Positions 20,672-45,834 of a stretch of 64,000 nucleotides of DNA are shown one piece after another. How positions within the stretch are numbered: the stretch's first letter is position 1; the number at the start of each line of letters is the position of its first letter. The stretch is from the IMG/VR virus record IMGVR_UViG_3300035181_000357, positions 146,612-210,611 of that record. One strand, 5' to 3'. The notes under the pieces were generated by a model. That model ran no database searches and was not told the DNA's origin. It saw nothing but the letters and a program-made list of their open reading frames with translations. The translations under genes were made by a program, and so were the position numbers.

Positions 20672-20676
20672 GAGTT

Positions 20677-21480
20677 GTGGTGCACAAGTTCTATTCTGAC
20701 CGTTCCGATAACGATGACCACGCCGATCAGAACGGCTGGAACCATGGTCTTGGTAAGGTTGTTCGCAAGGCCGTTCAGGATCCTGAGGCTACTGCCTACG
20801 ATAGCTTGGATTCCCTTCCGAAGCACGAAAACAACCACAAACGCCTTGGGTACTGGGGACATCGTCGTCCCAACATCCACTGGCGAAAGGTCAATCGTTG
20901 GGTTCTGGCCCAGGTTGGTAGGCATATCGACGATGTCCGTTCTGAGTTCATCAAACTGGCCAACGAAGGTGATCCCTACATCCGTGAACGCCTCGTCTCA
21001 GCTTTCGAATCCAATGTCCCGACCATCCGTGGGCAGATTGAAATCTGCATCAGCAAAGAGGGTGGATGGCCATACCTTGGTCTGGTTACTGAAACCGGGC
21101 ACATCGAAAAGAGCTACTACCGTCGTCGAGATCTGTACATCAATCTCTCTGGGATCATCTGTCAGGTTTCCAACAAGACGTACAAGGAGCTTGAACGCCT
21201 TCAGGAGAAGCAGCGGAAGGAAAGCAACAACAAGGTTATCTGGGTTAATGATGTCCGAGGTTTCATCTGTCTCCGGGATCAGTGGTTCGAAGTCATCTAT
21301 GCTAAGTTGAACTCTGATTTCAATCGCAATCTTCTTAGCCTTGACTGTCTTCTGTGTCGGAAGCTGAAGAAGAGCTGGTATAACTCGCACCTCGAAGTCT
21401 TCGGTCATCTCCACGGTAATATCTACTGTGTCGCCCTTCGGTCTGTGTCTTATCGAGATATCGAAAAACTTCTTGTGTAG
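20677..21480 (+). CDS. Hypothetical protein
   Basis: 267 aa, biased codons, GGAG SD, GTG start. Confidence 0.7.
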   Translation: MVHKFYSDRSDNDDHADQNGWNHGLGKVVRKAVQDPEATAYDSLDSLPKHENNHKRLGYWGHRRPNIHWRKVNRWVLAQVGRHIDDVRSEFIKLANEGDPYIRERLVSAFESNVPTIRGQIEICISKEGGWPYLGLVTETGHIEKSYYRRRDLYINLSGIICQVSNKTYKELERLQEKQRKESNNKVIWVNDVRGFICLRDQWFEVIYAKLNSDFNRNLLSLDCLLCRKLKKSWYNSHLEVFGHLHGNIYCVALRSVSYRDIEKLLV

Positions 21481-21801
21481 TTCTTTTAAATCAAAGACGA
21501 TTCTTTTAAGTTTGCTATGATTGCTGATGAACTTAACTTAACAAGGTGAAGTAATGTATCGTGAACATGATGAAAAAGAATGTAAGAGCTGTAATTGCCC
21601 TGAGCATGGTAAGCCAAATGGTGGGGCAGGAGAGATTACCCTCCTGTTTGTAATCATTGTTGTTGTTGTTCTCTTGTATTGGAGATAACATGGCTGAATG
21701 TAGGCAATGTCAAAATCCTCATCTCAAAAGTCTTCGGATCTCTACATGGTAATGTCTACTACATTATCGAGATATCGAAAAACTTCTTGTGTAGTTCTTT
21801 T
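21450..21801 (+). repeat. 38-bp perfect direct repeat (21450-21487 and 21764-21801) within a decayed duplicate of a gene end
   Basis: TTATCGAGATATCGAAAAACTTCTTGTGTAGTTCTTTT occurs twice. Confidence 0.95.
21554..21688 (+). CDS. 44-aa Cys-rich membrane peptide
   Basis: MYREHDEKECKSCNCPEHGKPNGGAGEITLLFVIIVVVVLLYWR; AAGGTG SD. Confidence 0.5.
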   Translation: MYREHDEKECKSCNCPEHGKPNGGAGEITLLFVIIVVVVLLYWR

Positions 21802-21883
21802 GACTTCGAGTAATAATTATGTAGAACCAAACGGTTCTCTTCCCACAGAGAGTGGGTCGTATTAAAAATACACGGAGAGTGTC

Positions 21884-22897
21884 ATGCATGAATATGCGAT
21901 CGTCATCGGAAGATTTCAACCCTTCCATCTGGCCCACAAGCAACTGCTCGAGAAAGCGTTCGAGGTTGCGAGTAGGGTCATAATTATTTTAGGTAGCCAT
22001 GCAGCTGCCCAAACTTCCAAGAATCCCTGGACTAGTCAAGAACGAATCAAGATGATCGAGTCGGCTCTGACACAAGAGCAGAGTGATCGCATTACATTCC
22101 TTCCAGTCCGCGACTATCTTTACAATGAGAATGTCTGGTTGTCTGAAATTCAGCAGAAGGTTAAGGTGGTCACCAACAACTCCAAATCGGTCGTGTTGAT
22201 TGGTCACATGAAGGATGAGTCAAGCAGTTATCTCAAGACTTTCCCTCAGTGGGAATTCATTGAGACCAAGGCCGCTTTTGATCTGTCTGCTACTGATATT
22301 CGCCATTCTCTGTTCACCACTGAAGGATGGGCTGACTCAGCTCAAAAAGTTCCTCAGAAGGTGCAAAACTATCTGGTCAACTGGTGCCGAACTTCGGACT
22401 ATGTTCGCCTGAAGGAAGAGTACACCTACCTCCAGAAGTATAAGGCTTCTTGGGCTGTGGCTCCTTATCCTGTGACCTTCGTGACTGCTGACGCTGTCGT
22501 GATCAAGTCTGGTCACGTCCTAGTGGTCAAGCGTGGTGGAAATCCTGGCAAGGGCTTGATCGCTCTCCCTGGTGGATTCGTAAATCAGAATGAAAGCCTT
22601 GATGTGGCTTGCCTTCGAGAGCTCAAGGAAGAGACCAAGATAAAGGTCAGCATGGATAAGCTGACCTCTGCTCGTCAAACCAACCACGTGTTCGACCACC
22701 CACAGCGTAGTCTCCGTGGTCGTACTATCACTTATGCCTACCTGTTCGACTTGGGTAAAGAGGGAGACCTCCCAACCGTCAAGGGTTCAGATGATGCCGA
22801 GACTGCTTTCTGGATGCCTATTGGAGATGTATATTCCAATGAGGCTACCTTCTTCGAAGATCATCGCGACATCATTCTCTATTTCCTCGGCCGATAG
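21884..22897 (+). CDS. nadM: Bifunctional NMN adenylyltransferase / Nudix ADP-ribose hydrolase
   Basis: GRFQPFHLAH, KNPWT, SATDIR, PGGFV...RELKEET Nudix box, GSDDA, FFEDH. Confidence 0.93.
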   Translation: MHEYAIVIGRFQPFHLAHKQLLEKAFEVASRVIIILGSHAAAQTSKNPWTSQERIKMIESALTQEQSDRITFLPVRDYLYNENVWLSEIQQKVKVVTNNSKSVVLIGHMKDESSSYLKTFPQWEFIETKAAFDLSATDIRHSLFTTEGWADSAQKVPQKVQNYLVNWCRTSDYVRLKEEYTYLQKYKASWAVAPYPVTFVTADAVVIKSGHVLVVKRGGNPGKGLIALPGGFVNQNESLDVACLRELKEETKIKVSMDKLTSARQTNHVFDHPQRSLRGRTITYAYLFDLGKEGDLPTVKGSDDAETAFWMPIGDVYSNEATFFEDHRDIILYFLGR

Positions 22898-22903
22898 GCT
22901 ACC

Positions 22904-23215
22904 ATGAATTCTCACAAACCTACTCCAACCATTTCCTACAAGGACAACTGGTACCATCACGAATACTATGTCGATGGGAAACAACTCAAGGACATTAGAC
23001 GAGTTGAGATCGGAAAAGAATTAAAGTCATTCGTAGTTCCTGTCAACTCGTTCAAGGATGCTGTGACCTATAACGATATGGGTCATGAATATACGTCATA
23101 TTCAACTCAGTTTACCGTGACCATGCGCGACGAGATGCTTCTGATTCCAAACGAAATCCCTCTATCACGTCTTCTCAGTCTTGGCTTCTTCGTCAAACTC
23201 GTTGATGGTGAATAA
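22904..23215 (+). CDS. Hypothetical protein
   Basis: 103 aa; in frame with the nadM TAG stop. Confidence 0.65.
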   Translation: MNSHKPTPTISYKDNWYHHEYYVDGKQLKDIRRVEIGKELKSFVVPVNSFKDAVTYNDMGHEYTSYSTQFTVTMRDEMLLIPNEIPLSRLLSLGFFVKLVDGE

Positions 23216-23237
23216 ACTTTCCTAAAGGAGAAATACC

Positions 23238-24650
23238 ATGTATAATTATAACTTGATACTAGATTCGGATAGTTACAAAATGTCTCACTGGGTACAATAC
23301 CCACATGGAGATAACTTCAAGACCACTTCCATGTTCTCCTATCTGGAGAGTCGTGGTGGTAAATATGATTTCACCCTTTGGTTCGGACTCCAGTATCTCT
23401 TGAAAGAATACTTGTCCCAGCCCATCACGATGGAGATGGTCGAAGAAGCCAAGGAGATCACTGAACTCCACGGTACTCCCTTCAATTATGATGGTTGGAA
23501 GTACATTGTCGAGAAGCTTGGTGGTCGTATTCCTGTTCGTATCCGTGCCGTCCCTGAAGGAACTAAGGTTCCTATCCACAATATCCTGATGTCCGTCGAA
23601 TCCACTGATGGGAATGTGCCATGGATCGCCAGCCATGTGGAAACCATGCTTATGCGTTGTTGGTATCCTACTACTGTAGCCACTCAATCCAAGACCATCA
23701 AGGATCTTATCCTCAGCTATCTCACAAAGACATCAGAAGATCCTCAAGATGAGATCGCTTTCAAGCTTCACGACTTCGGTAGCCGTGGTGTCAGCTCCTT
23801 TGAATCTGCTGGCTGGGGTGGTGCTGCCCATCTGGTAAACTTCATGGGAACTGATACGATTGCTGGTCTTCTCCTAGCTCGTAAGTTCTATCATGAACCT
23901 ATGGCTGGTTACTCTATCCCTGCTGCCGAGCACAGTACTATCACTAGCTGGGGTCGTGAGAACGAAGTCCAAGCATATCGTAACATGCTCAAGCAGTATG
24001 CTAAGCCTGGTGCATTACTGGCTGTGGTCTCTGATTCCTACGATATCTACAACGCTTGTGAGAATCTCTGGGGTGGAGAGCTTCGCCAGGAAGTCATTAA
24101 CTCCGGCGCTACCGTGGTTATCCGCCCTGACTCTGGTCATCCTGCTACTGTGGTTCTCAAGTGCCTCGAGCTTCTCGGTTCAAAATTCGGCTACACCATT
24201 AATTCTAAGAACTACCGCGTACTCAATAACGTTCGTGTTATCCAGGGTGACGGTGTGAATTACGACTCCATCCTGGAGATCTTGGAAGTTGCCACTCAAC
24301 ATGGTTGGTCTGCCACCAACATCGCCTTTGGTATGGGTGGTGCTCTTCTTCAAATCGTCAACCGTGATACTCAGCAGTTCGCCTATAAGTGCAGCAGCAT
24401 GACTCGTACCTACACTGATGGGCACGAAGAGCAGATTGATGTCTACAAGCAGCCTAAGACCGACTCTATGAAGAACTCTAAGCGTGGTCGGCTGGATCTG
24501 ATCTTGACTGAGACTGGGTATCACACTGTCAAACTCCTTCTTGGTGAACAGGCCCATCCTGCCTCTGCAATGCAGACCGTCTATGAAAATGGTGAGATCC
24601 TGGTTGATGACACCTTTGATATTATTCGTGAGAGGTCCAACCATGTCTAG
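23238..24650 (+). CDS. nadV: Nicotinamide phosphoribosyltransferase (NAMPT)
   Basis: DSYKMSH, LHDFGSRG, AAEHS, VVSDSYD, VIRPDSG, IQGDG, FGMGGALLQ. Confidence 0.95.
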   Translation: MYNYNLILDSDSYKMSHWVQYPHGDNFKTTSMFSYLESRGGKYDFTLWFGLQYLLKEYLSQPITMEMVEEAKEITELHGTPFNYDGWKYIVEKLGGRIPVRIRAVPEGTKVPIHNILMSVESTDGNVPWIASHVETMLMRCWYPTTVATQSKTIKDLILSYLTKTSEDPQDEIAFKLHDFGSRGVSSFESAGWGGAAHLVNFMGTDTIAGLLLARKFYHEPMAGYSIPAAEHSTITSWGRENEVQAYRNMLKQYAKPGALLAVVSDSYDIYNACENLWGGELRQEVINSGATVVIRPDSGHPATVVLKCLELLGSKFGYTINSKNYRVLNNVRVIQGDGVNYDSILEILEVATQHGWSATNIAFGMGGALLQIVNRDTQQFAYKCSSMTRTYTDGHEEQIDVYKQPKTDSMKNSKRGRLDLILTETGYHTVKLLLGEQAHPASAMQTVYENGEILVDDTFDIIRERSNHV

Positions 24651-34522: not shown

Positions 34523-35614
34523 ATGGAAAGAAAGCTAGTAACTATTAGAGAGATCGCTGCAGTGAATCCTATCCCCGATGCAGATGCCATCGAGGTGGTA
34601 ACTGTAGATGGATGGAAAGTGGTCTCCAAGAAAAATGAGTTCAAGCCAGGAGATCTCTGCCTATACTTCGAGATCGACAGCTTCCTACCTATCAAGCCAG
34701 AGTATGAGTTTCTGCGTAAGAGTAGCTACAAGAAGGTCATCGATGGTACGGAAGGATTCAGACTCAAGACCGTAAAACTGCGTGGTCAGATCAGCCAAGG
34801 TCTGGTTATGCCTATCTCAGAAGATATTCTGAAGACTCTGGCTCCAGTAGCTAGTTCGGATCTCAGGACTCTTCTGGACCAAGATCTCACCGAGTTGTTT
34901 GGTGTGACCAAGTGGGAGCCACCTCTGTCTGCCTGTCTTTCTGGGTTGGTTAAGGGTAACTTCCCATCACATACTCCGAAGTCTGGCCAGGAGCGTATCC
35001 AGAATCTGAAATACTTCTTCGAACTCTATAAAGATGAAGAGTTCGAGATGAGTCTGAAACTCGATGGAAGTTCATGCACTATGTATTTGGATCGAGAGGA
35101 TGTCTTTGGAGTCTGTTCACGTAATCTGGATCTGAAACCAGACGAGAGCAATAGCTTCTGGAAACAAGCCTATATTCATGGTGTTGAAGACAGACTCAAG
35201 ATAATTCATTCTGTATCTGGGTTGAATCTCAGTATCCAAGCTGAATTGGTTGGGGAAGGAATTCAGGAGAACCACGAGAAGATCAAGGGCCAAGATCTGT
35301 ATGTCTTCAATATCTGGGACCAACACCTCGGACGATCCTTGACCCCATCTGAACGACATGCTACACTGGATGCTCTAAACGATCTCCAGGTCTTAGGTTC
35401 CAAGCCACTTAAACATGTCCCTGTAATTGGGTATGAGAAGGTCTTCACCAAGTATCAGACACTAGAAGCTCTCTTTGAATTCGTGGAAAGCCTAGCTGGG
35501 ATGAATCCTGGTGTAATCCTCGAAGGCGTAGTGTTCAAGAGTGTAAGACCTATAAATGGTAGCATTGTAAGCTTTAAGATCGTCAGCAATAAGTACCTTC
35601 TTTCCAAGAAATAA
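34523..35614 (+). CDS. RNA ligase, Rnl2-like (DRB0094 type) with N-terminal OB domain
   Basis: IPDADAIE N-terminus, KLDGSS (motif I), CSRN, QAELVG, FNI, EGVVFK, FKIVSNKYLL. Confidence 0.88.
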   Translation: MERKLVTIREIAAVNPIPDADAIEVVTVDGWKVVSKKNEFKPGDLCLYFEIDSFLPIKPEYEFLRKSSYKKVIDGTEGFRLKTVKLRGQISQGLVMPISEDILKTLAPVASSDLRTLLDQDLTELFGVTKWEPPLSACLSGLVKGNFPSHTPKSGQERIQNLKYFFELYKDEEFEMSLKLDGSSCTMYLDREDVFGVCSRNLDLKPDESNSFWKQAYIHGVEDRLKIIHSVSGLNLSIQAELVGEGIQENHEKIKGQDLYVFNIWDQHLGRSLTPSERHATLDALNDLQVLGSKPLKHVPVIGYEKVFTKYQTLEALFEFVESLAGMNPGVILEGVVFKSVRPINGSIVSFKIVSNKYLLSKK

Positions 35615-35985: not shown

Positions 35986-36101
35986 GATCCCATAGCTCAG
36001 TTGGACAGAGCAACAGCCTTATCGCACTCCTGACCAGGTGGGTTTGGAACTGCATGGCTCTAAGCTGTAGGTCGCTGGTTCGAGCCCAGCTGGGATCACC
36101 A
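35986..36101 (+). tRNA. tRNA (probably Arg-UCU) with 39-nt insert in anticodon loop
   Basis: All four stems and CCA intact; removing 36021-36059 gives loop CT-TCT-AA; A20 present. Confidence 0.8.
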
Positions 36102-36589
36102 AATTGGTTTCTGGATAGTGTGGCAATGCTGATACTGTTGGTTAGACCTGATACCAACAAAATACCGCTTCTAAGTAGTTGTAGCGGGTAGTCGGATAAC
36201 TACTAGACTCCGACATGTTAACGCTGTTGAAGAGTCCATAACACTTGGTAGCATTACCTAAGTGGCGCGGAGTTTGGACACTGTTAGCTAAACCGCCTAA
36301 TGCTAACAAATACATCTTGGGGAATACTCTCCAGTTCATAATGAAAGATGGTAGTAGGATAGAAACGGGCTAACTCCTACATGTTAACGCTGTTGAGTCT
36401 ATCTTGGTGGGCATCGCTCCCACCAAGATAGACTGTTTTACCTCCTGTCTGAATCGCCCTGATCTCGTGGTACCTGAACTTTATGTCCATCTATATCCTG
36501 CAAATGAACTGTAGACATGGCTACCATCAGGGTTTCGAGACTCAGATCATAGGTATAGAATACTGTATTCAGTGGAGTACCACGATCCT
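36102..36589 (+). ncRNA. Structured non-coding block A (tandem motif, long hairpins)
   Basis: No credible ORF; many helices, including a perfect 15-bp hairpin at 36396-36432. Confidence 0.55.
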
Positions 36590-36664
36590 GTGGCCTTAGC
36601 TCAACGGTAGAGCATCGCCCTTTTAAGGCGAGGGTTGTGGGTTCGAGTCCCACAGGCCACACCA
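36590..36664 (+). tRNA. tRNA-Lys(UUU)
   Basis: Canonical cloverleaf, TCGCC-CTTTTAA-GGCGA, CCA. Confidence 0.95.
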
Positions 36665-37030
36665 TCCGAGGTGGGTTAAGCGTCACTGTGATGGCAGTAC
36701 GGATACCCACAGCATAAACTGCATGATGCTGGTCTTTACCTCCCGATAGTAGAATCTCGAAAGAGACTACTATTATACCCGACAAACCATTCCACTACTG
36801 ACATAGTGGAAACATAAATCGGAGCCGTGTCAGCGGTAATGCGGAACATGAACTATTTGTTGCGATAGTCGTGAGTTCGCCGGGAGTTATTAAATCCCCA
36901 TGTGATGGCTCGTATTAGAGCGAAGGATGCGTAAGCACCCAACAGGCTGAAGATAACACAGCGTATCATATGTTTTTGTTTTAGGAGAGCCCTGTCAGAA
37001 CTCTTCGGAGGAGGGTTAGACTCCCTATTA
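36665..37030 (+). ncRNA. Structured non-coding block B
   Basis: Helices capped by GAAA, GTAA and TTCG tetraloops. Confidence 0.6.
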
Positions 37031-37032
37031 AT

Positions 37033-37108
37033 AGCCCTATAGCTCAGCGGTCAGAGCTGACGGCTCATAACCGTCTGGTCCTAGGTTCGAACCCTAGTGG
37101 GGCTACCA
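37033..37108 (+). tRNA. tRNA(CAU), Ile2/Met elongator type
   Basis: GACGG-CTCATAA-CCGTC, CCA. Confidence 0.9.
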
Positions 37109-37109
37109 A

Positions 37110-37568
37110 ATCGTTTACTAGTTCGATTCTAATAAAAACTAGTCGAGGGGGATGGGTGAAGAATGCTGGTCTCAGGATAGAGACTATTCCCATCGGGTGA
37201 GACCTTATCCAATCTCTTCCTGCAGGAGCCGCGTAAAAAAGTCAAAAGAACCTTGGTGCTACACTATGCGCGAGTTATTGATAAAATCAATAGCGTCTCC
37301 TTTATGGATAGCGGTAGGAATTCGCTGCAAAATCCAAGGCTACCCTACTTAGGCATGCGGTAGGGTAAATTTCTCGAAATCTCAGGTTTCGTTGAACTAC
37401 GAAGTAACTGTACCGTAGTGAGGAATCTGTGACAGCGACATGGGTCGGGCCATGGCTGGCGACACCAGCTAAAAAGATGTTCCTGTGGGAAGGGTAACGT
37501 ATACTTTCTTCAGAAGACGTGCCAGTCCGGCTGGTGTCCAGCATGTATCTACCTCTACTGGACTTAAA
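37110..37568 (+). ncRNA. Structured non-coding block C
   Basis: Dense helices and alternative pairings, no credible ORF. Confidence 0.55.
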
Positions 37569-37653
37569 GCTCCCATGGCGGAATTGGTAGACGCTACGGA
37601 CTTAAAATCCGTCGCCTATGGGCATCCCGGTTCGACTCCGGGTGGGAGCACCA
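37569..37653 (+). tRNA. tRNA-Leu(UAA)
   Basis: Class II cloverleaf, CCA. Confidence 0.95.
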
Positions 37654-37832
37654 AACTGTTCTCTGTTACAGTCTTAACAGAGTGGTCCAGGCGGGGAAAT
37701 TCCCCATCCGTAGTCCCTATGCTACAGAAGGTCATAGGGTGGTGGAGGCGGTGTGACCTCGGTCATGCTTCTAGGTGTCGGGTGCGTAAGCAACATGACT
37801 CGAGTCAGATCCTCTAAGTCTGACATATTTCT

Positions 37833-38170
37833 GGGCCTGACAAGGTTTCGACAGGTTGTTAGCTTGGGATTGCGGTGCAGGGACTGGTTGATCAGCAGGC
37901 CAGTATAAAAGCAGATCAAACTTTAATTGCCGAGCCACAGCTCGCACTAGCAGCTTAAACACTGCTACGAGGAACCGCGAGAGGACAGTAGCGGGGAATC
38001 GTCACCACCGTCCTAGTTTCTACTAAGAGTTCGGGTAAGTAGGAGCGAAACTACGCGATCAAACGATAGTAGGCTGTCAGTCGCCGACCTATCGAGACCA
38101 GACTGACTAACCCTGTGAATGACTTCAATACAACTCTTCTTGGACGTGGGTTCGAATCCCACCAGGTCCA
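37833..38170 (+). ncRNA. ssrA: tmRNA, tag AEPQLALAA
   Basis: GGGCCTG..GGTTTCGAC 5' end, T arm, G3.U70 pair, tag ORF 37929-37958; CCA not encoded. Confidence 0.93.
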
Positions 38171-38676
38171 CATCGGTAGACTTCCTAGTTCTTACGGAGA
38201 ATAGGAACATGGAAGTCTACCATACAACCCTCTAAGATAATGGATGGACAAGAGGTAGGAAATTCCCTAGCGATAGGGATTAAGATCGGCGAGTGCCGAT
38301 ATACGGAGGTAGTTATGGCTACTGAACCAGAGGACAACGACGGTCTACTCGGGACCGAGCGTGAATCAGATGAAGAAGGTTGTCCAGATTATGACAAGGA
38401 CGACGACGAGTAACACTGTACCATAATACCGGGGATGGGGACGACAGGCCCATACAAAGCAGATCCATAGTGTAAAAACTATGGGTGATGAAAGTCTGCC
38501 ATGTCAGTTGATTCTCTAGACTGACAAACCTTAAGTTGGATGCAAACGGAAGACGACTCGCCATCGACCCCAGGCACATGGGGAACCACGGCCTTTCCCA
38601 GATAGCGTAGTGGCCCTACGACGATGCGTGGAAGGTGGGATTATTCCCTTAAAAGCACTGTGTCATCCAACTACTT
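38171..38676 (+). ncRNA. Structured non-coding block E
   Basis: Many helices, including long-range GTTGGATG/CATCCAAC. Confidence 0.55.
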
Positions 38677-38754
38677 GATCCCATCGTCTAAACTGGTTTA
38701 GGACAGTAGCCTCTCAAGCTGCAGATCCGGGTTCGAATCCCGGTGGGACCACCA
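38677..38754 (+). tRNA. tRNA-Glu(CUC)
   Basis: GTAGC-CTCTCAA-GCTGC, CCA. Confidence 0.9.
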
Positions 38755-38756
38755 AG

Positions 38757-38843
38757 GCCGAGGTGCCAGAGTGATTGAATGGGCAGGTTTTGTAATCCTG
38801 TAGAGAAATCTCGTCATGGGTTTGAATCCCATCCTCGGCTCCA
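38757..38843 (+). tRNA. tRNA-Thr(UGU) with long variable arm
   Basis: Loop TT-TGT-AA, G1-C72/C2-G71, U73, V-arm GAG-AAAT-CTC. Confidence 0.75.
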
Positions 38844-39011
38844 ATCAAAATTTATTTCATAAAAGTTATCTTCCAGAGATTGTAGTTCGTAATTAATGAA
38901 TTATGTGGTCATGGCCACGCGAATTCCCTTTGACAATTTCATAGAGATCAAGCACACGAGCTCTGCTGTAGAGTCTAACGATTCTGGCACACATGCCGTG
39001 TGTATTTATTA

Positions 39012-39096
39012 GGTAGGGTGGACAATGGTCGTCAAGCGGCTTTGAATACCGTCGCTCCGAGAGGAGTTGCAGGTTCGAATCCTGTCCCTACCGCCA
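39012..39096 (+). tRNA. tRNA-Ser(UGA)
   Basis: Long V-arm, G73, CCA. Confidence 0.9.
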
Positions 39097-39105
39097 ATCT
39101 TTAAT

Positions 39106-39183
39106 GGCCCAGTACGCTAATTGGCAGATGCGGTAAGTTTCAAAAACTTGTGGTTGTCGGTTCGAATCCGACTTGGGCTACCA
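39106..39183 (+). tRNA. tRNA-Leu(CAA), short variable loop
   Basis: TAAGT-TTCAAAA-ACTTG, A73, CCA. Confidence 0.8.
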
Positions 39184-39185
39184 AT

Positions 39186-39274
39186 GGAAGATCGGCACAG
39201 TTGGAGAGGTGCGCCAGTTTGCTAAACTGGTAGATGTAACAGTCTAGAGGGTTCGATTCCCTTATCTTCCGCCA
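39186..39274 (+). tRNA. tRNA-Ser(GCU)
   Basis: CCAGT-TTGCTAA-ACTGG, long V-arm, G73. Confidence 0.93.
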
Positions 39275-39467
39275 AAGTCGTCGCTCGCAAAGCGGAGAGA
39301 GGTAAGTAAGACAGATTAATGGTCTAGAACATCCTGTCAGAGAATACCTTGTAGGTTCAAATCCTACCTTGACAACAATACGCAACGCCATAGAAAAGCC
39401 TTCATCTTAATAGGGATGGGGGGGAAACCCTCGCTGGCTTTTCACCACTTTCGTTGCATTCTTATTA

Positions 39468-39541
39468 CGGTCACTGGCGCAGCCTGGTAGCGCACCTGCT
39501 TTGGGAGCAGGGGGTCGAGTGTTCGAATCACTCGTGGCCGA
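39468..39541 (+). tRNA. tRNA-Pro(UGG), no encoded CCA
   Basis: CTGCT-TTGGGAG region, C1-G72, canonical D arm. Confidence 0.88.
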
Positions 39542-39580
39542 CATCGTGATCTAGACTTAGGTTTAGATCACACAATATCT

Positions 39581-39657
39581 CGGGGTGAAAGTGAGCCTGG
39601 TACACGGTCTGGTTTGGAACCAGAAGATCGTCGGTTCAAATCCGACCTCCCCGACCA
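39581..39657 (+). tRNA. tRNA-Pro(UGG), second divergent copy
   Basis: TCTGG-TTTGGAA-CCAGA, CCA. Confidence 0.85.
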
Positions 39658-39692
39658 ATATCAAACTTTATAATTATATGTAGAGGACTATC

Positions 39693-40049
39693 ATGTTCAA
39701 AGCTAAACTACTAAAGACTGCATCAAGTCCACAATTGACTCTGGCTCAACAAGTCTATGCTCAACATAAGGCAGAGATAGATCCTAAGATTTTCAAGGCT
39801 GCTGACTATGTAGTTGATAATGCTATCGATCTAGATTCTGAAACTGCAGATAATCATCTATTTGGTGATGCTATATTTGAGCCATGGTTTGAAGCCAGCC
39901 CAGAATATCTCAGTATGACAGAAGAATCTGGGAACGAAGATGACGAGACCGATTATATTGGTGGTGTCTGGGAACAAGTTCTGTCTACAAATCCAAAGTA
40001 TAAAGATGTCGTAGCTAAATTTGCTGACATCAGAATCAATGGATATTAA
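39693..40049 (+). CDS. Acidic hypothetical protein starting MFKAKLLKTAS, inserted in the tRNA array
   Basis: AGAGG SD and late-type motif upstream. Confidence 0.75.
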   Translation: MFKAKLLKTASSPQLTLAQQVYAQHKAEIDPKIFKAADYVVDNAIDLDSETADNHLFGDAIFEPWFEASPEYLSMTEESGNEDDETDYIGGVWEQVLSTNPKYKDVVAKFADIRINGY

Positions 40050-40055
40050 TATCAT

Positions 40056-40134
40056 GGAGTGCTAGGGGAGTCAGGCCGTCCCCAGTTGCTTGTCACGCAA
40101 CAGATCACGGGTTCGAATCCCGTGCACTCCGCCA
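40056..40134 (+). tRNA. tRNA-Asp(GUC)
   Basis: GTTGC-TTGTCAC-GCAAC, G73, CCA. Confidence 0.92.
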
Positions 40135-40254
40135 TTCTCTCTAGAAATAGAGGATCATGAGTTGGGTAGAATCCACGTCTGAGGGACGTTAGGTGTCTGC
40201 TGTGCTGCAGCGAGAAACCCCACTAGCAGACCCTGTCTCATGATCAAATATCAT

Positions 40255-40331
40255 GCTCCGTATGCTGAAGTTGTCGAGGCGTTGGTCTGCAAAACCAATC
40301 TTAGCCAGTTCAAGTCTGGCACGGAGCTCCA
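40255..40331 (+). tRNA. tRNA-Cys(GCA)
   Basis: TTGGT-CTGCAAA-ACCAA, U73, CCA. Confidence 0.93.
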
Positions 40332-40360
40332 AATTCGTAATGCCCTTTAGAAGCTTTCAT

Positions 40361-40453
40361 CCACTATAAGGACGTTATCGGAGGTTCGAATCCTCCTCCC
40401 GGAACCAATATCTTATTTTTCATTCCGGGATAGCTTAGTGGCCTAAAGCACGT
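40361..40453 (+). ncRNA. Circularly permuted tRNA-like gene (3' half before 5' half)
   Basis: T arm, TCCCGGA-A-CCA, 16-nt linker, TCCGGGA, D arm, CGT. Confidence 0.75.
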
Positions 40454-40493
40454 AAAAGAGCTTTTTTACTATTTTCATTGCGAAGCCTATTAT

Positions 40494-40579
40494 GGTCCAG
40501 GAGTCCAACGGTTGAGACAGCACGCTGTTAACGTGCCGCTGTAAAAGCACATAGGGTTCAACTCCCTACTGGATCGCCA
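40494..40579 (+). tRNA. tRNA-Asn(GUU) with long variable arm
   Basis: GCACG-CTGTTAA-CGTGC, V-arm GCT-GTAAA-AGC, G73. Confidence 0.85.
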
Positions 40580-40630
40580 TCGGGTAATGATCCCAAGAGA
40601 TATATCAAAGAAGCAAATGAATTTATCCAT

Positions 40631-40718
40631 GCATCAGCGGCAGAGTTGGAGGGCTGCAACGGTCTGTAAAACCGTCGGGTTGATCCCCTAGTAGGTTCGA
40701 GTCCTACCTGATGCACCA
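40631..40718 (+). tRNA. tRNA-Tyr(GUA)
   Basis: ACGGT-CTGTAAA-ACCGT, long V-arm. Confidence 0.93.
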
Positions 40719-40720
40719 AA

Positions 40721-40795
40721 GTCGATAGTGGACGAGGGACGTCCGGGAGTCTTCTAAACTCCATTCTCCGGGTTCGAGTCCTGGTATCGACACCA
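40721..40795 (+). tRNA. tRNA-Arg(UCU), intact
   Basis: GGAGT-CTTCTAA-ACTCC, CCA. Confidence 0.88.
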
Positions 40796-40799
40796 ATTT

Positions 40800-40891
40800 C
40801 CCGGTGTGATGTACGGTTGCATAGGTGGCTTTATACCCCACTCGCGCCAGATTAGCGCCTTGTTAGGGTTCGACTCCCTACGCCGGGACCA
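40800..40891 (+). tRNA. Atypical class II tRNA, anticodon ambiguous (UUA possible)
   Basis: Acceptor, D, V and T arms and CCA present; anticodon arm GGTGG-CTTTATACC-CCACT. Confidence 0.6.
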
Positions 40892-40969
40892 ATTCTTGAT
40901 AACGCCTTCGAATCAGGTTTCATCCATTAAATGAAAAGCCTGTTCATCCTGTTCTTCGTTATCATCCAC

Positions 40970-41043
40970 TGCGCTGTCGTCTAGTGATAAGGCAAGAGAC
41001 TTTGACTCTCTGAACGTAGGTTTGATTCCTGCCAGCGTAACCA
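40970..41043 (+). tRNA. tRNA-Gln(UUG)
   Basis: U1-A72, AGAGA-CTTTGAC-TCTCT. Confidence 0.9.
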
Positions 41044-41165
41044 TCGATTAACTTTCTTTTGAGAGTTCATCAAAATATCATCATCAGTATACTTCCAACC
41101 TGTTGGTAAAATAGAAGGGCTGTTGATGTTAGCACGACTGTTCGACTCAGCCTCGTGCGAAATAT

Positions 41166-41240
41166 GGGCTATAGGAATTAAAGGTTGTTCGCATGACTGA
41201 AAATCATGAGGAGGCGGTTCGATACCGTCATAGCCCACCA
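41166..41240 (+). tRNA. tRNA-Phe(GAA)
   Basis: CATGA-CTGAAAA-TCATG, CCA. Confidence 0.88.
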
Positions 41241-41242
41241 AC

Positions 41243-41322
41243 GTCCGGGTACGCAAATCTGGCAAAGCGACTATCCTCAGAAGGTAGTGACTCTGTGGGT
41301 TCGACTCCCACCTCGGACACCA
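41243..41322 (+). tRNA. tRNA-Leu(CAG), short variable loop
   Basis: CTATC-CTCAGAA-GGTAG, CCA. Confidence 0.85.
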
Positions 41323-41403
41323 ATCAATGCAGATGTACGCTATCTGGTATCTCGGAAATCCTGAAAAGGTTGTGTTTTTAGCACACCGTAACAGGCTTCC
41401 ATC

Positions 41404-41490
41404 GCGGATATGGTGGAACTTGGTAGACACGCAGCTTTGAGATGGCTGTCCCGAAAGGGGGTGGGGGTTCGAGTCCCCCTATCCGCACCA
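41404..41490 (+). tRNA. tRNA-Leu(GAG)
   Basis: Class II cloverleaf, CCA. Confidence 0.92.
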
Positions 41491-41588
41491 ATGTTAGGGG
41501 TTAATGCGGTAGCTGACGCAAGAAACAGTCGCTTCCCCAACATGGAGAGAATCTTGCGTGACTCTCCTCACCTTGTGCGATAAAATAT

Positions 41589-41662
41589 GGGTCCTTAGTT
41601 AAGCGGGATAACTTCTGGTTTGCATCCAGACATCGGGAGTTCGATTCTCCCAGGATCCACCA
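41589..41662 (+). tRNA. tRNA-Ala(UGC)
   Basis: G3.U70, TCTGG-TTTGCAT-CCAGA. Confidence 0.92.
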
Positions 41663-41665
41663 TAT

Positions 41666-41749
41666 GGGGCTGAAGTGACTTTGGTAAGCACACCGTTAGG
41701 GCGTACGCCGAACGGAGGTTATGGGTTCGATTCCCGTCATGTTCCACCA
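41666..41749 (+). tRNA. Ala-identity tRNA-like RNA with masked anticodon (6-nt insert)
   Basis: G3.U70, A73-CCA, D and T arms; arm CCGTT-AGGGCGT-ACGCCG-AACGG. Confidence 0.65.
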
Positions 41750-41755
41750 ATCAAT

Positions 41756-41841
41756 GCATCGGACGCAGAACTGGTTGCTGCCCCAGACTCTTAATCTGGT
41801 TCCTAACGGACTTGGGGGTTCGAATCCCCTCCGATGCACCA
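41756..41841 (+). tRNA. tRNA-Lys(CUU) with long variable arm
   Basis: CCAGA-CTCTTAA-TCTGG, V-arm TCC-TAAC-GGA, A73. Confidence 0.85.
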
Positions 41842-41847
41842 AATATC

Positions 41848-41924
41848 AAGGAGTTGGCCGAGGCTGGCATAGGCGATGGTTTGTGGTACCATACACAGGG
41901 GTTCGAATCCCCTACTCCTGACCA
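41848..41924 (+). tRNA. tRNA-His(GUG), A73 and no G-1
   Basis: ATGGT-TTGTGGT-ACCAT, CCA. Confidence 0.8.
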
Positions 41925-41978
41925 ATTTTTAGGATGTTTTAAACTTCCTGATGCTACTATAGTGAATATGGAGTTTAA

Positions 41979-42977
41979 ATGTCCCATGATAATTATGTCG
42001 TAAAGGTTGGAAACGATTATGTAGAAAGAAGTGCCTTTGTAATCGCTGATTCTACAGATCCTCTTGCTGTTGCTCGTGTTACTAACACTGCTCCTGGAGC
42101 TAGTGATTATGGCGTAGTAGTCAGAATGATCGGTACTGTCTCTGTCACTGGTGGTGGCGGTGGTGCTGTCTATGGACCTTCGTCCCTAGGTGTGGTATTA
42201 TCAAATCCTCCAGTAGCAATTGGTGGAGTTGATGCTGGAGGCTTGTTAAGAGTTATCAGGACTGACGCTGCTGGATATGGGCTAAACATGATTACCAATG
42301 GTACGCAGTTCATGCCCACCATGGATGCTGCGGCTCGTCGTGGTTACATGACTCACACAGATGGTACGAACTCCATGCCAACTGGTGATGCTGTTGCTCG
42401 TGGTATTTATCATCGTATTACGGATGGTGTTACACAAGTGGCCGTTAAAGCAGCTTCGACTGCTGCTGTCGCTGCTGATCCTGCCTTGGTAGTAGCGCTG
42501 TCTCCAAACAATAACACTGCTGCCCTAGCCTGGTTTGAGAAGATCACTGATGGAACAAATACTGCAGCTGTTAAAGCTTCTACTACTGTAGCTGCTATTA
42601 CTGATCCTGCCTTGGTTACGACTCTGAGTCCTAACCTTCCTGTTCCAACGATGAGCACTATCTCATCTGCTGCGACAACGAATGCTACATCTGTTAAAGC
42701 ATCTGCTGGAACCGTATTCAATATCGTATGTTCTAATACTGGTGCTGCTGCTGCGTATGTCAAGTTCTACAACAAGGCTTCTGCTCCTACAGTCGGTACA
42801 GATGTTCCTGTATTTACATTGACCATTCCAGCTTCTGGCTCAGTAATAATCCCTGCATCGTTGATTGGTATTAGATTTGCTACTGGTATTGCTCTGGCAA
42901 TTACCAATTTAGCAGCTGATTCTGATACAACGGCTGTAGTCTTAAATCAAGTCAAAGTAATGACATCCTATATTTAA
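41979..42977 (+). CDS. Ala/Thr-rich repeat protein, probable fibre/decoration protein, inside the tRNA array
   Basis: Repeats ITDG..AVKA(A/S)T..A..DPALV..LSPN and MPT.DA.AR.G. Confidence 0.7.
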   Translation: MSHDNYVVKVGNDYVERSAFVIADSTDPLAVARVTNTAPGASDYGVVVRMIGTVSVTGGGGGAVYGPSSLGVVLSNPPVAIGGVDAGGLLRVIRTDAAGYGLNMITNGTQFMPTMDAAARRGYMTHTDGTNSMPTGDAVARGIYHRITDGVTQVAVKAASTAAVAADPALVVALSPNNNTAALAWFEKITDGTNTAAVKASTTVAAITDPALVTTLSPNLPVPTMSTISSAATTNATSVKASAGTVFNIVCSNTGAAAAYVKFYNKASAPTVGTDVPVFTLTIPASGSVIIPASLIGIRFATGIALAITNLAADSDTTAVVLNQVKVMTSYI

Positions 42978-42995
42978 TAGGATGGTGGTACTACT

Positions 42996-43069
42996 GCGGG
43001 TGTAGCTCAACGGTAGAGCTCCTGGTTTCCACCCAGATGACGAGGGTTCAATTCCCTTCACCCGCTCCA
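42996..43069 (+). tRNA. tRNA-Gly(UCC)
   Basis: GCGGGTG acceptor, U73, CCA. Confidence 0.95.
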
Positions 43070-43080
43070 TTTTTCTCCAT

Positions 43081-43158
43081 AGAGGGTAACGCGAAGTGGT
43101 TGAGCGGCCAGCCTTTCAAGCTGTCGATTAGCGGGTTCAAATCCCGTACCCTTTACCA
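43081..43158 (+). tRNA. tRNA-Glu(UUC)
   Basis: Loop CT-TTC-AA, CCA. Confidence 0.88.
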
Positions 43159-43186
43159 AAGATTCTAAATTTTCGTTGAATTTTAT

Positions 43187-43263
43187 GTCCCCATAGCTGA
43201 GTCTGGCCTTAGCACCGTTCTACGAAAGCGGAGACACTGGTTCAAATCCAGTTGGGGATACCA
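43187..43263 (+). tRNA. tRNA-Arg(ACG)
   Basis: CCGTT-CTACGAA-AGCGG. Confidence 0.9.
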
Positions 43264-43266
43264 ATT

Positions 43267-43341
43267 GCCAGCAAACCCGAATGGTGAGGGGGATGTCTCA
43301 TAAGCATCTTGTCAAGGGTTCGAATCCCTTTGTTGGCACCA
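43267..43341 (+). tRNA. tRNA(CAU) Met/Ile2
   Basis: GATGT-CTCATAA-GCATC, CCA. Confidence 0.88.
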
Positions 43342-43346
43342 CCAAT

Positions 43347-43434
43347 GGAAGATCGCCGAAGTCGGAGCGTCGGAACAGCCTGGAAAGTTGTGGCCGTCAA
43401 AGGCCAGAGAGTTCGAATCTCTCATCTTCCGCCA
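43347..43434 (+). tRNA. tRNA-Ser(GGA)
   Basis: Long V-arm, G73. Confidence 0.92.
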
Positions 43435-43561
43435 TTGAAGAAGAAGAATAAGAATAAGAAGGGTGACCAGAGCGTGATTAATCTGGTTTCATAAAGGTGA
43501 GCTTCCTACATCTTATAAAGATGCACTGCTCGTTACTGTCAGTTCTCAGAAATAAGTTTAT

Positions 43562-43635
43562 TCCAGATTCATTCAAAGGTAGGATGGGAGTTTCTGAAGC
43601 TCTTAATGATGGTTCGAATCCATCATCTGGATCCA
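43562..43635 (+). tRNA. tRNA-Gln(CUG)
   Basis: U1-A72, loop TT-CTG-AA. Confidence 0.85.
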
Positions 43636-43669
43636 TCTAGTGTGTAGCATACATCTATATTTAATCTAT

Positions 43670-43743
43670 TGACCTGTAACTCAATGGCAGAGTAATCGAC
43701 CGATAATCGATAAATGGCAGTTCGAATCTGCCCAGGTCAACCA
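43670..43743 (+). tRNA. tRNA-Ile(GAU) with C33
   Basis: ATCGA-CCGATAA-TCGAT. Confidence 0.88.
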
Positions 43744-43777
43744 ATCCTCTTAGATTTAAATACCAAATAGGAGTAGT

Positions 43778-43918
43778 ATGCAGTTACTAGGTGTGATATC
43801 CATAGTAATCTTCAGCTTATGGTTAGTCTTCAGAAAGAAGAAATGCCATGACTGTGCTAATTCCTTCTGTAAGAATGGGTCTGTGGTGCTAGCGGGAACA
43901 CGCTTGAATGGCATTTAA
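43778..43918 (+). CDS. 46-aa membrane/Cys peptide overlapping tRNA-Ala(GGC)
   Basis: TAGGAG SD; MQLLGVISIVIFSLWLVFRKKKCHDCANSFCKNG... Confidence 0.45.
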   Translation: MQLLGVISIVIFSLWLVFRKKKCHDCANSFCKNGSVVLAGTRLNGI

Positions 43919-43951
43919 GAGTTAAGGGTTCGACTCCCTTCAGATCCACCA
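43877..43951 (+). tRNA. tRNA-Ala(GGC)
   Basis: G3.U70, A32-U38, CCA. Confidence 0.88.
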
Positions 43952-43954
43952 ATA

Positions 43955-44023
43955 CATCCGATATCAAACGGTCAGATACCAGACTTTTAATCTGGAGAGG
44001 CTTGACTCCCACCGGGTGCCCCA
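43955..44023 (+). pseudogene. Degenerate tRNA-Lys(UUU)
   Basis: CCAGA-CTTTTAA-TCTGG intact but T arm eroded. Confidence 0.55.
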
Positions 44024-44039
44024 GTTCTTGTTGGTTCAT

Positions 44040-44114
44040 GGCCCTTTAGCTCAGTGGTAGAGCGGCTTCTTTACACGGAGAAGGTCGGCGGTTCAATCCC
44101 GTCAAGGGCTACCA
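44040..44114 (+). tRNA. tRNA-Val(UAC)
   Basis: Loop TT-TAC-AC, canonical D and T arms. Confidence 0.9.
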
Positions 44115-44118
44115 AAAT

Positions 44119-44191
44119 CGGGAGATAGCTTAAGTGGTAGAGCGGTCTTTGCGCAAGATAGATGGTGCTTCGAGAGCATCTCTCCCGGCCA
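44119..44191 (+). tRNA. tRNA-Arg(GCG), rare isoacceptor
   Basis: Loop TT-GCG-CA, G73, CCA. Confidence 0.7.
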
Positions 44192-44195
44192 ATAT

Positions 44196-44270
44196 GCCTC
44201 ATTAACTCAGCGGAAGAGTTCTGGTCTTCGAAACCAGCAGTCGGCGGTTCGAATCCGTCATGAGGCACCA
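44196..44270 (+). tRNA. tRNA-Arg(UCG)
   Basis: CTGGT-CTTCGAA-ACCAG. Confidence 0.92.
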
Positions 44271-44306
44271 ACTTCGATGTATTATAATGTAAAGTATCTT
44301 TGAAAT

Positions 44307-44385
44307 TGCGGGTGGACTGGTCGGCAATCAGGCGATGTCTCATAAGCATTGTAAAACGGAGGTTCAACTCCCCGACCCGCTACCA
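44307..44385 (+). tRNA. Atypical tRNA-Met(CAU) with 1:72 mismatch and bulged T stem
   Basis: Loop CT-CAT-AA, ACCA end. Confidence 0.65.
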
Positions 44386-44444
44386 AATTTGCAGTACCCT
44401 CTCTTCCAGCTTTATACAGCCGCTAGCTGGACGGCTTTAGCCCC

Positions 44445-45212
44445 ATGTGGGTAGGAGATAGCATGATGCATTATAACAACTCAATCGTAACGATTCTAGA
44501 TGCAAAGACTAAGAATCAATTCCGGGAATATGATCATATAAGACAAGGAAACTTGAGTCAGGTAACTGTCCGAGTTCCTTTTGGATCTGAATATTTATTC
44601 CGTTTTAAATTTCCTGATCAGAAACGTCGTCGGCTTGAGATATCAATCGATGGTACTCTGGTTACAGACAATCTCATCATCACTGATGGTAGTGAACTAG
44701 AGAGATTTGTTGAATCTGATAAAAGATTCAAGTTCGTGGAAGCATCGAATGATGCCGTATCCGATCCAGGTTCTCCATCAAATGGAAAGATCGAGATAAA
44801 GCTCTTTGAAGAATCCCTTCCAATCACCCATCTGACTAAGACCTGGAATGACAACGTTATCTATCGGCCAATCAAAGGTTATCCTGGACCAGGATGTGAG
44901 ATCACATGTTCCTCCTATTCCTCAGATATGAACTTGAATGTCTATAATACTAGTAGCTGCAATGCTTCAAACGTTCTTAGAAGTATGGCATCTAATGACA
45001 TCGGAGCTACGGTAGAAGGATCTAGATCTAAGCAAGAATTTGGATCAACTACATGGCAAGGTGATTCTTTCTGTAGTACTTTCATCTTCTGGATGAAGGG
45101 TAAGCAAAATGATACAAAAGAAGATAAGTTCTGTAGCTCTTGTGGTAACAGTATTCGTAGTGCTGCAGATCGTTTCTGTTCAAAGTGTGGCAACAAAATT
45201 TCTAGAACTTAG
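44445..45212 (+). CDS. Hypothetical protein with C-terminal double Zn ribbon
   Basis: FCSSCG ... FCSKCG; start uncertain. Confidence 0.7.
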   Translation: MWVGDSMMHYNNSIVTILDAKTKNQFREYDHIRQGNLSQVTVRVPFGSEYLFRFKFPDQKRRRLEISIDGTLVTDNLIITDGSELERFVESDKRFKFVEASNDAVSDPGSPSNGKIEIKLFEESLPITHLTKTWNDNVIYRPIKGYPGPGCEITCSSYSSDMNLNVYNTSSCNASNVLRSMASNDIGATVEGSRSKQEFGSTTWQGDSFCSTFIFWMKGKQNDTKEDKFCSSCGNSIRSAADRFCSKCGNKISRT

Positions 45213-45248
45213 AAACACTTAATCGTAAGTGTTATCTAAGAGTGTCGT

Positions 45249-45629
45249 ATGGATTTTGAGTATGGAAGCCTTGATAGGGACATTGATATGGAGCATAGGA
45301 ATCTATGCTCCATATTAGATGATATCACAGAAGCTATCAAGACTCAAGGCCTAATAGAGCCTCTTTTAGAACAGCTATTACACGATAGTGTTATTCATTT
45401 CAAAAATGAAGAAGCTAAAATGCAATTCTATAAGTTCCCTCGTGAAGAATATGAAAGACACAAAGAAGCTCACATTAAACTTATCTCTGTATTCGAAGAG
45501 ATGTTAGAACGCTACACAAATTCTCCTGTGAGGAATTATATCTATTACAGGTTTGTGGATTCATGGCTCAAAAATCATTTCAAGGGCATGGATTCAAAAT
45601 TCGCTGACTTCTTGAATAATAAGAAGTAA
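45249..45629 (+). CDS. Bacteriohemerythrin-like protein
   Basis: IDMEH, HFKNEE, HKEAH, WLKNHFKGMD. Confidence 0.88.
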   Translation: MDFEYGSLDRDIDMEHRNLCSILDDITEAIKTQGLIEPLLEQLLHDSVIHFKNEEAKMQFYKFPREEYERHKEAHIKLISVFEEMLERYTNSPVRNYIYYRFVDSWLKNHFKGMDSKFADFLNNKK

Positions 45630-45641
45630 TAACTAGTTACT

Positions 45642-45717
45642 GGTTCCGAAGCTCAATGGTAGAGCAAGGAGTCTCTAAAACTTCTGGCTGTGGATTCGAA
45701 TTCCACCGGAATCACCA
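45642..45717 (+). tRNA. Amber suppressor tRNA (CUA)
   Basis: AGGAGT-CTCTAAA-ACTTCT, normal D and T loops, A73-CCA. Confidence 0.88.
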
Positions 45718-45834
45718 AATCAAGGGAGAATAGTATGACTGGAAGATCACACCTCTAGGTCCTAGCTCGCTCGCCATGACCTTATAGTATATGTCTGTTG
45801 CTAACTAAGCCTACATATTCTAAAGGAGAAAACA

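Follow-up and report, generated by a model that had tools for sequence, protein, structure and literature searches.

A phage CUA tRNA gene in a conserved cassette with a TAG-containing leader and a PTH2-like gene: a candidate stop-codon read-through sensor

The CUA tRNA gene and its array

The stretch of DNA analyzed here, called the window below, makes up the final 64 kb of an IMG/VR virus record of 210,611 bp. Within an array of tRNA genes, a tRNA gene with a CUA anticodon (45642-45717) is followed by a leader mini-ORF with an in-frame TAG (45735-45779), a predicted hairpin (45774-45838), and, just downstream, the gene for a 211-amino-acid protein, P0001 (45835-46470), part of which is predicted to have a PTH2-like fold. 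All four features lie on the plus strand. The source is a very divergent, uncultured jumbo myovirus of 210.6 kb. Its recognizable proteins include a tail sheath and a ribonucleotide reductase, the majority of its large proteins have no PHROG match, and a megablast search of the locus against deposited phages returned zero matches. CheckV puts the completeness of the record at 69%, and thus about a third of the genome (about 31%) lies unseen.

The array comprises about 44 tRNA genes and a tmRNA gene on the plus strand (35986-49042), as predicted by ARAGORN and Rfam. ARAGORN called 41 tRNA and tmRNA genes in the window, and Rfam added three tRNAs that it had missed: a Trp-CCA tRNA at 48968-49042, a third CAT tRNA at 43267-43341, and one at 35986-36101. 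The last of these (plus strand; Rfam, 58 bits) has an insertion of about 40 nt inside the anticodon loop, and its anticodon reads UCU or UAU depending on the point at which the insertion is excised. The tmRNA gene (37833-38171, plus strand; Rfam, 93 bits) has the predicted tag peptide AEPQLALAA. Four plus-strand calls of 86 to 92 nt, Thr-UGU (38757-38843), Asn-GUU (40494-40579), Ile-UAU (40800-40891), and Lys-CUU (41756-41841), have class-II-like long variable arms, which are normally absent from these isoacceptors; the Lys-CUU tRNA resembles the Tyr-GUA tRNA of the array (40631-40718) in its acceptor and D arms. Directly upstream of the array lies an Rnl-type RNA ligase gene (34523-35614, plus strand; PF09414 and a PHA02142 OB domain; phrog_968). 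The array also holds a 332-amino-acid ORF (41979-42977, plus strand) with strong codon bias and relatives at 46 to 63% identity in seven IMG/VR contigs, where no tRNAs were found within 10 kb of these relatives. A 336-kb contig with a relative of this ORF carries 39 tRNAs, none of them CUA, and the sole relative of the tail sheath is on a 58-kb fragment without tRNAs.

ARAGORN predicted the CUA tRNA as a 76-nt gene at 45642-45717 on the plus strand, with anticodon CTA, an encoded CCA end, and discriminator A73. The gene belongs to the Rfam tRNA family RF00005, with a score of 57 bits (cut-off 29; local E = 4.5e-12). At minimum energy it folds into a cloverleaf that has G18G19, a T-loop of UUCGAAU, and a 7-nt anticodon loop, CUCUAAA, in which CUA is flanked by U33 and a purine at position 37, as expected of an amber suppressor. 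ARAGORN labels the gene "Pyl" because of its anticodon alone. Two features are shared with tRNA-Pyl: the CUA anticodon and, in the window copy, a possible 6-bp anticodon stem, which an extra A after position 26 could form by pairing with U44. The body is otherwise unlike tRNA-Pyl, with G18G19, the UUCGAAU T-psi-C loop, two bases at positions 8-9, a normal D-loop, and a variable loop of 4 to 5 nt, and the PylS model TIGR02367 had no match in the 210-kb record (69% complete). The initial annotation had described a CUA tRNA with an ordinary, non-Pyl-like body and a possible 6-bp anticodon stem. The ARAGORN call, Rfam score, and cloverleaf bear out the first description, and the stem is present in the fold but is not conserved, as the homologous tRNAs mostly have 5 bp and only some could form the longer stem.

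We compared the gene with its counterparts in the 13 phage contexts described below. Among these 13 homologous tRNAs, 14 of the 16 pairs in the acceptor, D, and T stems show compensatory double changes, U33-CUA-A37 is invariant (13/13), and A73 is present in 12. No acceptor-stem identity elements are conserved among them beyond G1 and A73 (12 of 13). The closest paralogues in the array, the Trp, Leu, and Gln tRNAs, are only 68% identical, and this comparison gave no amino-acid identity for the CUA tRNA. We scanned IMG/VR for exact patterns of the tRNA body, allowing any anticodon, and of the anticodon arm; these scans returned nothing or chance matches without tRNAs. The pattern of substitutions indicates that the CUA tRNA is genuine and under selection. 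A chance or decaying gene, such as a recent functionless anticodon mutant of a sense tRNA, might be imagined, given that CUA is one base away from several sense anticodons and that the closest array paralogue is so distant. This view is effectively refuted by the conservation of CUA and the cloverleaf, with compensatory changes, in 13 divergent phages, and the locus is also identical in four metagenome DNA runs, whose contigs carry no informative variation. More widely, the locus is near-identical among sediment and microbial-mat metagenome runs; the runs that contain it are DNA only, with no RNA-seq among them.

Code usage in the phage genome

For the entire 210,611-bp record, we built a model of non-overlapping genes under table 11, scored by codon usage. 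It holds 203 genes at 88% coding density, ending in TAA (132 genes), TGA (39), or TAG (32, or 16%). None of the 203 genes in the visible genome has an in-frame TAG, no gap in the model is filled by a TAG-bridged ORF, and the only cases of long coding-strand ORFs linked by nothing but a TAG are two trivial adjacencies (20669 and 22895). We rejected the continuation behind the TAG at 20669, which is low-complexity junk in the wrong frame, and rejected the one at 22895 as read-through, because it is a neighboring gene with its own ATG. A search of the whole visible genome for genes gated by an early TAG gave none beyond controls. No release-factor domain was found in the visible part of this 69% complete record, and the visible genome encodes neither a Glu/Gln-type nor a Lys/Asp/Asn-type synthetase. 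The visible genome thus uses the standard code, and its stops and gene bodies are not those of a genome with TAG reassigned (code 15). Elsewhere, the region at 16000-24000 of the window has a G+C content of 0.47 to 0.51, compared with about 0.40 in the rest, and therefore carries long spurious antisense ORFs. The first 2.2 kb of the record (1-2223, outside the window) contain no convincing ORF under any stop-codon reading.

Recoded phages (crAss-like, Lak, Agate, and other phages; code 15 or code 4) have many in-frame TAGs in late genes, often together with RF2. Their suppressor tRNAs and the tRNA studied here have in common a phage-encoded CUA anticodon, an ordinary body, and, presumably, charging by a host synthetase. 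In contrast to those phages, this one ends 16% of its genes with TAG, has no TAG in gene bodies, and has no release factor that we could find. The tRNA could nonetheless mark progress towards TAG reassignment or be left over from it, or serve TAG-containing genes in the unseen part of the genome, which a 69% complete record could hide. We regard this as distinctly unlikely. The record includes structural genes, with which recoding begins in known cases, and these are free of TAG, the tail sheath among them; TAG is not depleted among the stops; and the cassette is maintained across phages up to 60% apart in protein sequence, all with standard-code neighbors. Suppressor tRNAs do occur in standard-code relatives of recoded phages, where they have been proposed to precede the code change (bioRxiv 10.1101/2021.08.26.457843), but in Lak phages a TAA suppressor persists without recoding of TAA (PMC8346664).

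The tRNA might instead act mainly by extending particular TAG-ended phage or host proteins through programmed C-terminal read-through, with the leader and hydrolase secondary. With 32 of 203 genes ending in TAG, any active suppressor is bound to cause read-through of some, and this view is compatible with the cassette as a dose controller. The extensions predicted behind TAG, however, have a median length of 6.5 codons, the same as the 6 codons behind TGA. The sole long in-frame continuation after a TAG stop on the coding strand spans 21884-23215 (plus strand): a 337-amino-acid NMN-adenylyltransferase (NMNAT)/Nudix-like gene (21884-22897) ends with TAG and is followed two codons later by an in-frame 103-amino-acid ORF that runs to 23215. 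This ORF has its own ATG, and same-frame neighbors are common behind TAA stops too. The authors of the XacN1 genome likewise found nothing behind 18 amber stops (PMC5852040), and it is the leader, not any other TAG-ended gene, that is conserved across the 13 contexts. Extension of particular proteins as the main role is therefore unlikely, if somewhat less so than a link to reassignment.

These results also bear on what the initial annotation had said about code usage. Its conclusion that the genome is not recoded stands. Of six TAG ends that it cited, those at 8958, 14797, 22897, 24650, and 33030 are in the gene model, and the sixth, at 21480, is the end of a listed ORF that the model did not select. 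Its proposal of programmed read-through agrees with the TAG in the 14-codon leader, and finds no evidence among selected phage or host genes, given the equal extension lengths behind TAG and TGA.

The leader, hairpin, and hydrolase-like gene across phages

Two IMG/VR relatives of P0001, at 44 to 47% identity, both have a tRNA(cta) directly upstream. A protein search placed P0001 in a family of at least 67 proteins of about 210 amino acids with no Pfam annotation, and we retrieved the contexts of ten further members from JGI, ENA, Logan, and one NCBI assembly. A tRNA(cta) lies 100 to 430 nt upstream of the P0001 homologue, on the same strand, in 13 of 13 distinct contexts, with homologues at 37 to 70% amino-acid identity. 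Six contexts have the tRNA(cta) without any other tRNA nearby. Neighboring genes there encode T4-like proteins of replication and morphogenesis (gp32, UvsX/RecA, Portal_T4, and rIIB). Given the complete linkage and the six contexts without other tRNAs, the tRNA and the hydrolase-like gene appear to move as a unit, in or out of arrays. Sequence comparison thus identifies the CUA tRNA as the first part of a conserved phage cassette consisting of the tRNA, a TAG-containing leader, and a PTH-like gene. RNA ligase and RlaP genes also lie near the cassette in three relatives (L058, L067, and L069), and in another the PTH2-like gene is directly followed by an ARAGORN-predicted tRNA (L070:4648-4727, plus strand) whose anticodon has four bases (tcaa).

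The leader in the window (45735-45779, plus strand) starts 18 nt downstream of the tRNA, is preceded by a Shine-Dalgarno (SD) sequence, AAGGGAG, read from the sequence (45722-45728, plus strand), and has 14 codons: MTGRSHL-TAG-VLARSP-TGA, with the TAG at 45756-45758, Arg-Ser-Pro at 45768-45776, and the final stop at 45777-45779. A leader lies between the tRNA and the gene in 12 of the 13 contexts, each time with a strong, AAGGAG-like SD before its ATG (12/12); examples are MKKL-TAG-VSTRPP, MS-TAG-TRPP, MVGRTHL-TAG-VDNRGP, MTKRFNNL-TAG-VVPRAP, MTGRNHL-TAG-VPSRSP, and MTPRGLT-TAG-VTRPP. The remaining context (L065) has the tRNA and the gene without a leader, and only an anti-SD-like CCTCCTT follows the tRNA. 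The leaders have 2 to 8 codons before the TAG and 4 to 6 after it, and a purine directly follows the TAG in 11 of 12. The peptide ends in Arg-(Ser/Ala/Gly/Pro)-Pro-stop in 11 of the 12, and in Ser-Pro-Pro-stop, without Arg, in L062.

This C-terminal motif is conserved at the level of the peptide, as in arrest leaders. The Arg codon alternates between CGN and AGA (AGA or AGG when Lak phages, described below, are included), and Pro is encoded by CCA, CCC, and CCG, with CCT as the first Pro codon of L062 and in Lak-B5. Such synonymous variation points to selection on the peptide, for which ribosomes must pass the TAG; the codon pattern therefore indicates that the part of the leader after the TAG is translated. 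The arrangement of an SD-led ATG, TAG, and Arg-x-Pro-stop occurs once in the 210-kb genome, counting both strands, versus 0.25 times per shuffled genome, and no in-frame TAG other than that of the leader is convincing anywhere in the 210 kb.

The end of the leader is predicted to form a hairpin (45774-45838, plus strand) with the SD and AUG of the downstream gene. The 5' arm consists of the Pro and stop codons of the leader and the next 15 or so nt, and the 3' arm covers the SD (45823-45828) and AUG (45835-45837) of the 211-amino-acid gene, with CCAU pairing with AUGG and CCUU with AAGG. Pairing of the leader end with the SD region, the AUG, or both is predicted in all 12 leader-bearing loci. 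Z-scores against dinucleotide shuffles range from -0.85 to -4.86, with seven of the 12 at or below -2.2 and five weak (above -1.6). The 5' arm always starts at least 15 nt after the internal TAG; thus, a ribosome that terminates at the TAG should not open the hairpin. From the ribosome footprint sizes known from the literature, we infer that a ribosome at the second stop should open it.

P0001 (45835-46470, plus strand) is predicted to have a four-helix N-terminal domain (residues 1 to 90) and a PTH2-like C-terminal domain (residues 91 to 211). An AlphaFold2 model from a 36-sequence alignment has a pLDDT of 90.6. Residues 91 to 211 of this model align by VIA-align with Pyrococcus horikoshii Pth2 (1wn2; Z = 10.2, rmsd 2.4 Å over 96 residues) and with Atu0240 (2gax; Z = 8.5), and the next match scores 4.8. 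Foldseek ranks archaeal and human PTH2 structures at the top, with probabilities of 0.92 to 0.99; matches in BFVD are "peptidyl-tRNA hydrolase" models of tRNA-rich jumbo phages (E down to 6e-5), and look-alikes in the ESM Atlas are viral PTH2 clusters. Sequence similarity to PTH2 falls short of family assignment: PF01981 scores 14.5 to 15.5 bits, below its 23-bit cut-off, and matches 3 of 36 family members at E <= 1, with its only six-frame match in the genome falling on the P0001 gene. A profile search of the P0001 family against PDB sequences found nothing, and a word-based search with the C-terminal domain alone found only the P0001 family. Based on the structural model, we assign the C-terminal domain the PTH2 alpha/beta fold. 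The invariant residues of the family alignment include Q107, Q111, H114, E181, D183, and T189, and the conserved K-L-Y-I-I, Q-x-x-H-A, and E-P-D..T-A segments resemble PTH2 motifs.

P0001 therefore appears to share its fold over residues 91 to 211 with archaeal and eukaryotic PTH2 enzymes (e.g., 1wn2, 1xty, and 1q7s), and likewise with the products of single-domain "peptidyl-tRNA hydrolase" genes in the tRNA-rich jumbo phages Myrna, RaK2, and Atu_ph07. It differs from PTH2 enzymes in its sequence, which is below the Pfam cut-off, in its obligatory linkage to a suppressor tRNA and leader, and in its additional N-terminal helical domain of 90 residues. No other part of the family is as highly conserved as this N-terminal domain, which gave no convincing structural match.

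A tblastn search of deposited phages with P0001 gave matches to the C-terminal domain in 15 Lak megaphage records and in two Stenotrophomonas jumbo phages. In the Prevotella phage Lak-B5 (MK250024.1; L072:2347-3300), a tRNA(UUA) lies about 580 nt upstream of the match. The leader MELQHW-TAA-VTCDRGP-TAA begins 30 nt after this tRNA, with a purine (G) after its internal TAA, and is followed by a 127-amino-acid ORF and then the PTH2-like ORF. Lak-A1 and Lak-C1 (L075 and L076) keep the tRNA(UUA) and the in-frame TAA, with Arg encoded by AGA or AGG, not CGT, and their peptide runs on beyond ..RGSP. SD masking would not be expected in the Prevotella hosts of Lak phages. Across these loci, the stop within the leader thus varies with the anticodon of the tRNA, UAG with CUA and UAA with UUA.

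The array of the cultured Stenotrophomonas phage RAS14 (OP752703.1) includes both tRNA(cta) and tRNA(tta), and we found no leader downstream of either. Its PTH2-domain gene (88311-89171; L071:2536-3396) is annotated from a GTG without an SD; 25 codons upstream is an SD-led in-frame ATG, with TAG as its third codon. This single case suggests, from sequence, that the gene could be gated directly by suppression. The RAS14 protein is larger and has a different N-terminal region, possibly HD-like by eye.

These loci bear on two earlier reports of orphan suppressors. The Xanthomonas jumbo phage XacN1 has two CUA tRNAs and the 18 amber stops noted above (PMC5852040), and a TAA suppressor is present in 51 of 51 Lak genomes, where TAA recoding is without evidence (PMC8346664). 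As in our phage, the suppressor reads a codon still used as a stop, and the authors found no targets. Unlike in those reports, a candidate target is at hand here, in the adjacent leader, and the Lak TAA-suppressor tRNA sits in the same kind of cassette, with a leader that has an in-frame TAA and a PTH2-like ORF.

A role outside decoding, in which the tRNA would be a decoy or replacement against a defence nuclease, or an aminoacyl donor or substrate for the neighboring enzyme, and the mini-ORF would be incidental, is improbable. The array, RNA ligase, and tmRNA do fit the tRNA-repair and replacement theme of phage counter-defence (PMC11555353), and the tRNA and hydrolase-like gene stay together even outside arrays. 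A decoy would mimic a sense anticodon loop, however, and a role of this kind does not sit with a leader stop that tracks the anticodon or with codon-level conservation that shows translation through that stop.

A proposed read-through sensor and its relation to known systems

We propose that the CUA tRNA is a functional amber suppressor with the leader UAG as its dedicated target, and that the cassette acts as a read-through sensor. We give this reading a probability of roughly 0.6. The tRNA and the leader-hydrolase mRNA would be produced from one locus, the tRNA would be charged by a host synthetase, and the charged suppressor would compete with release factor 1 (RF1) at the leader UAG. Where RF1 wins, the ribosome would leave at least 15 nt before the hairpin, and the ribosome-binding site and start of the 211-amino-acid gene would stay paired, keeping the gene off. 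Where the tRNA wins, translation would continue for 4 to 6 more codons to Arg-x-Pro-stop, a poor-termination, arrest-type ending. A ribosome held there would cover the 5' arm of the hairpin, which would free the SD and AUG and turn the gene on.

Termination is poor after a C-terminal proline. Because of this, and by analogy with RAPP and SecM motifs, we infer a ribosome pause at Arg-x-Pro-stop. At the known RAPP and SecM motifs, arrest occurs with Pro-tRNA, rather than a stop codon, in the A site (PMC10951233), and an Arg-x-Pro-stop arrest is therefore an analogy.

Once induced, P0001 would act on the acylated or peptide-carrying tRNA(CUA), or on peptidyl-tRNAs from failed termination; we consider these its most likely substrates. 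We favor a negative-feedback loop, in which the hydrolase would keep suppression low enough for the 16% of stops that are TAG. A close alternative is a sensor of release-factor or termination stress that induces a Pth, and the loop could also serve as a simple delay timer. Read-through of other genes genome-wide, among which we found no conserved target, may be a side effect or a further purpose. By holding UAG read-through at a set level, the cassette would allow a phage with 16% TAG-ended genes to tolerate a suppressor. Taken further, the cassette could be a mobile, self-contained circuit with a suppressor tRNA as its regulator, balancing stop-codon read-through against release-factor termination in the infected cell, a broader claim that we hold at slightly less than even odds. 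If true, such a circuit, in its CUA/TAG and UUA/TAA forms, would explain the "orphan" suppressors of standard-code jumbo phages and of all Lak megaphages.

Each component is already known separately: suppressor tRNAs in phages, leaders of the arrest type, and PTH2 genes in phages. Phage suppressor tRNAs have so far been read as tools of code change or as unexplained oddities. What is new is the conserved combination of tRNA, leader, and hydrolase-like gene, in which the leader's in-frame stop follows the anticodon; the full-text literature that we searched gives no account of this combination, nor of a leader stop that matches an adjacent suppressor tRNA. If the model holds, a natural sensor of stop-codon decoding built around a dedicated tRNA would be a new control input for leader peptides. 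It would bear on how phages tolerate and tune suppression, on the first steps of code change, and on compact synthetic parts for amber suppression.

Two groups of known systems come close. The arrest leaders (SecM-secA, MifM-yidC2, the RAPP-motif leaders ApdA and ApdP, ErmCL, and TnaC) share a short upstream ORF ending in Arg-small-Pro and a downstream SD in a hairpin, predicted here, that a paused ribosome would open. Unlike in those leaders, the input here would be a stop codon's decoding by a dedicated tRNA rather than secretion, an antibiotic, or a metabolite, and the pause would be, by analogy, at Pro-stop, not Pro-Pro. The autoregulatory frameshift of prfB (RF2) and vertebrate AMD1 each share with the cassette an element that measures stop-codon decoding; ribosomes that read through in AMD1 come to a pause at a stop further downstream, giving arrest in the C-terminal tail (PMC13025110). 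Those two systems use only cellular release factors or near-cognate tRNAs, whereas the cassette described here has its own cognate suppressor tRNA and, as the gene that would be controlled, one for a tRNA hydrolase-like protein.
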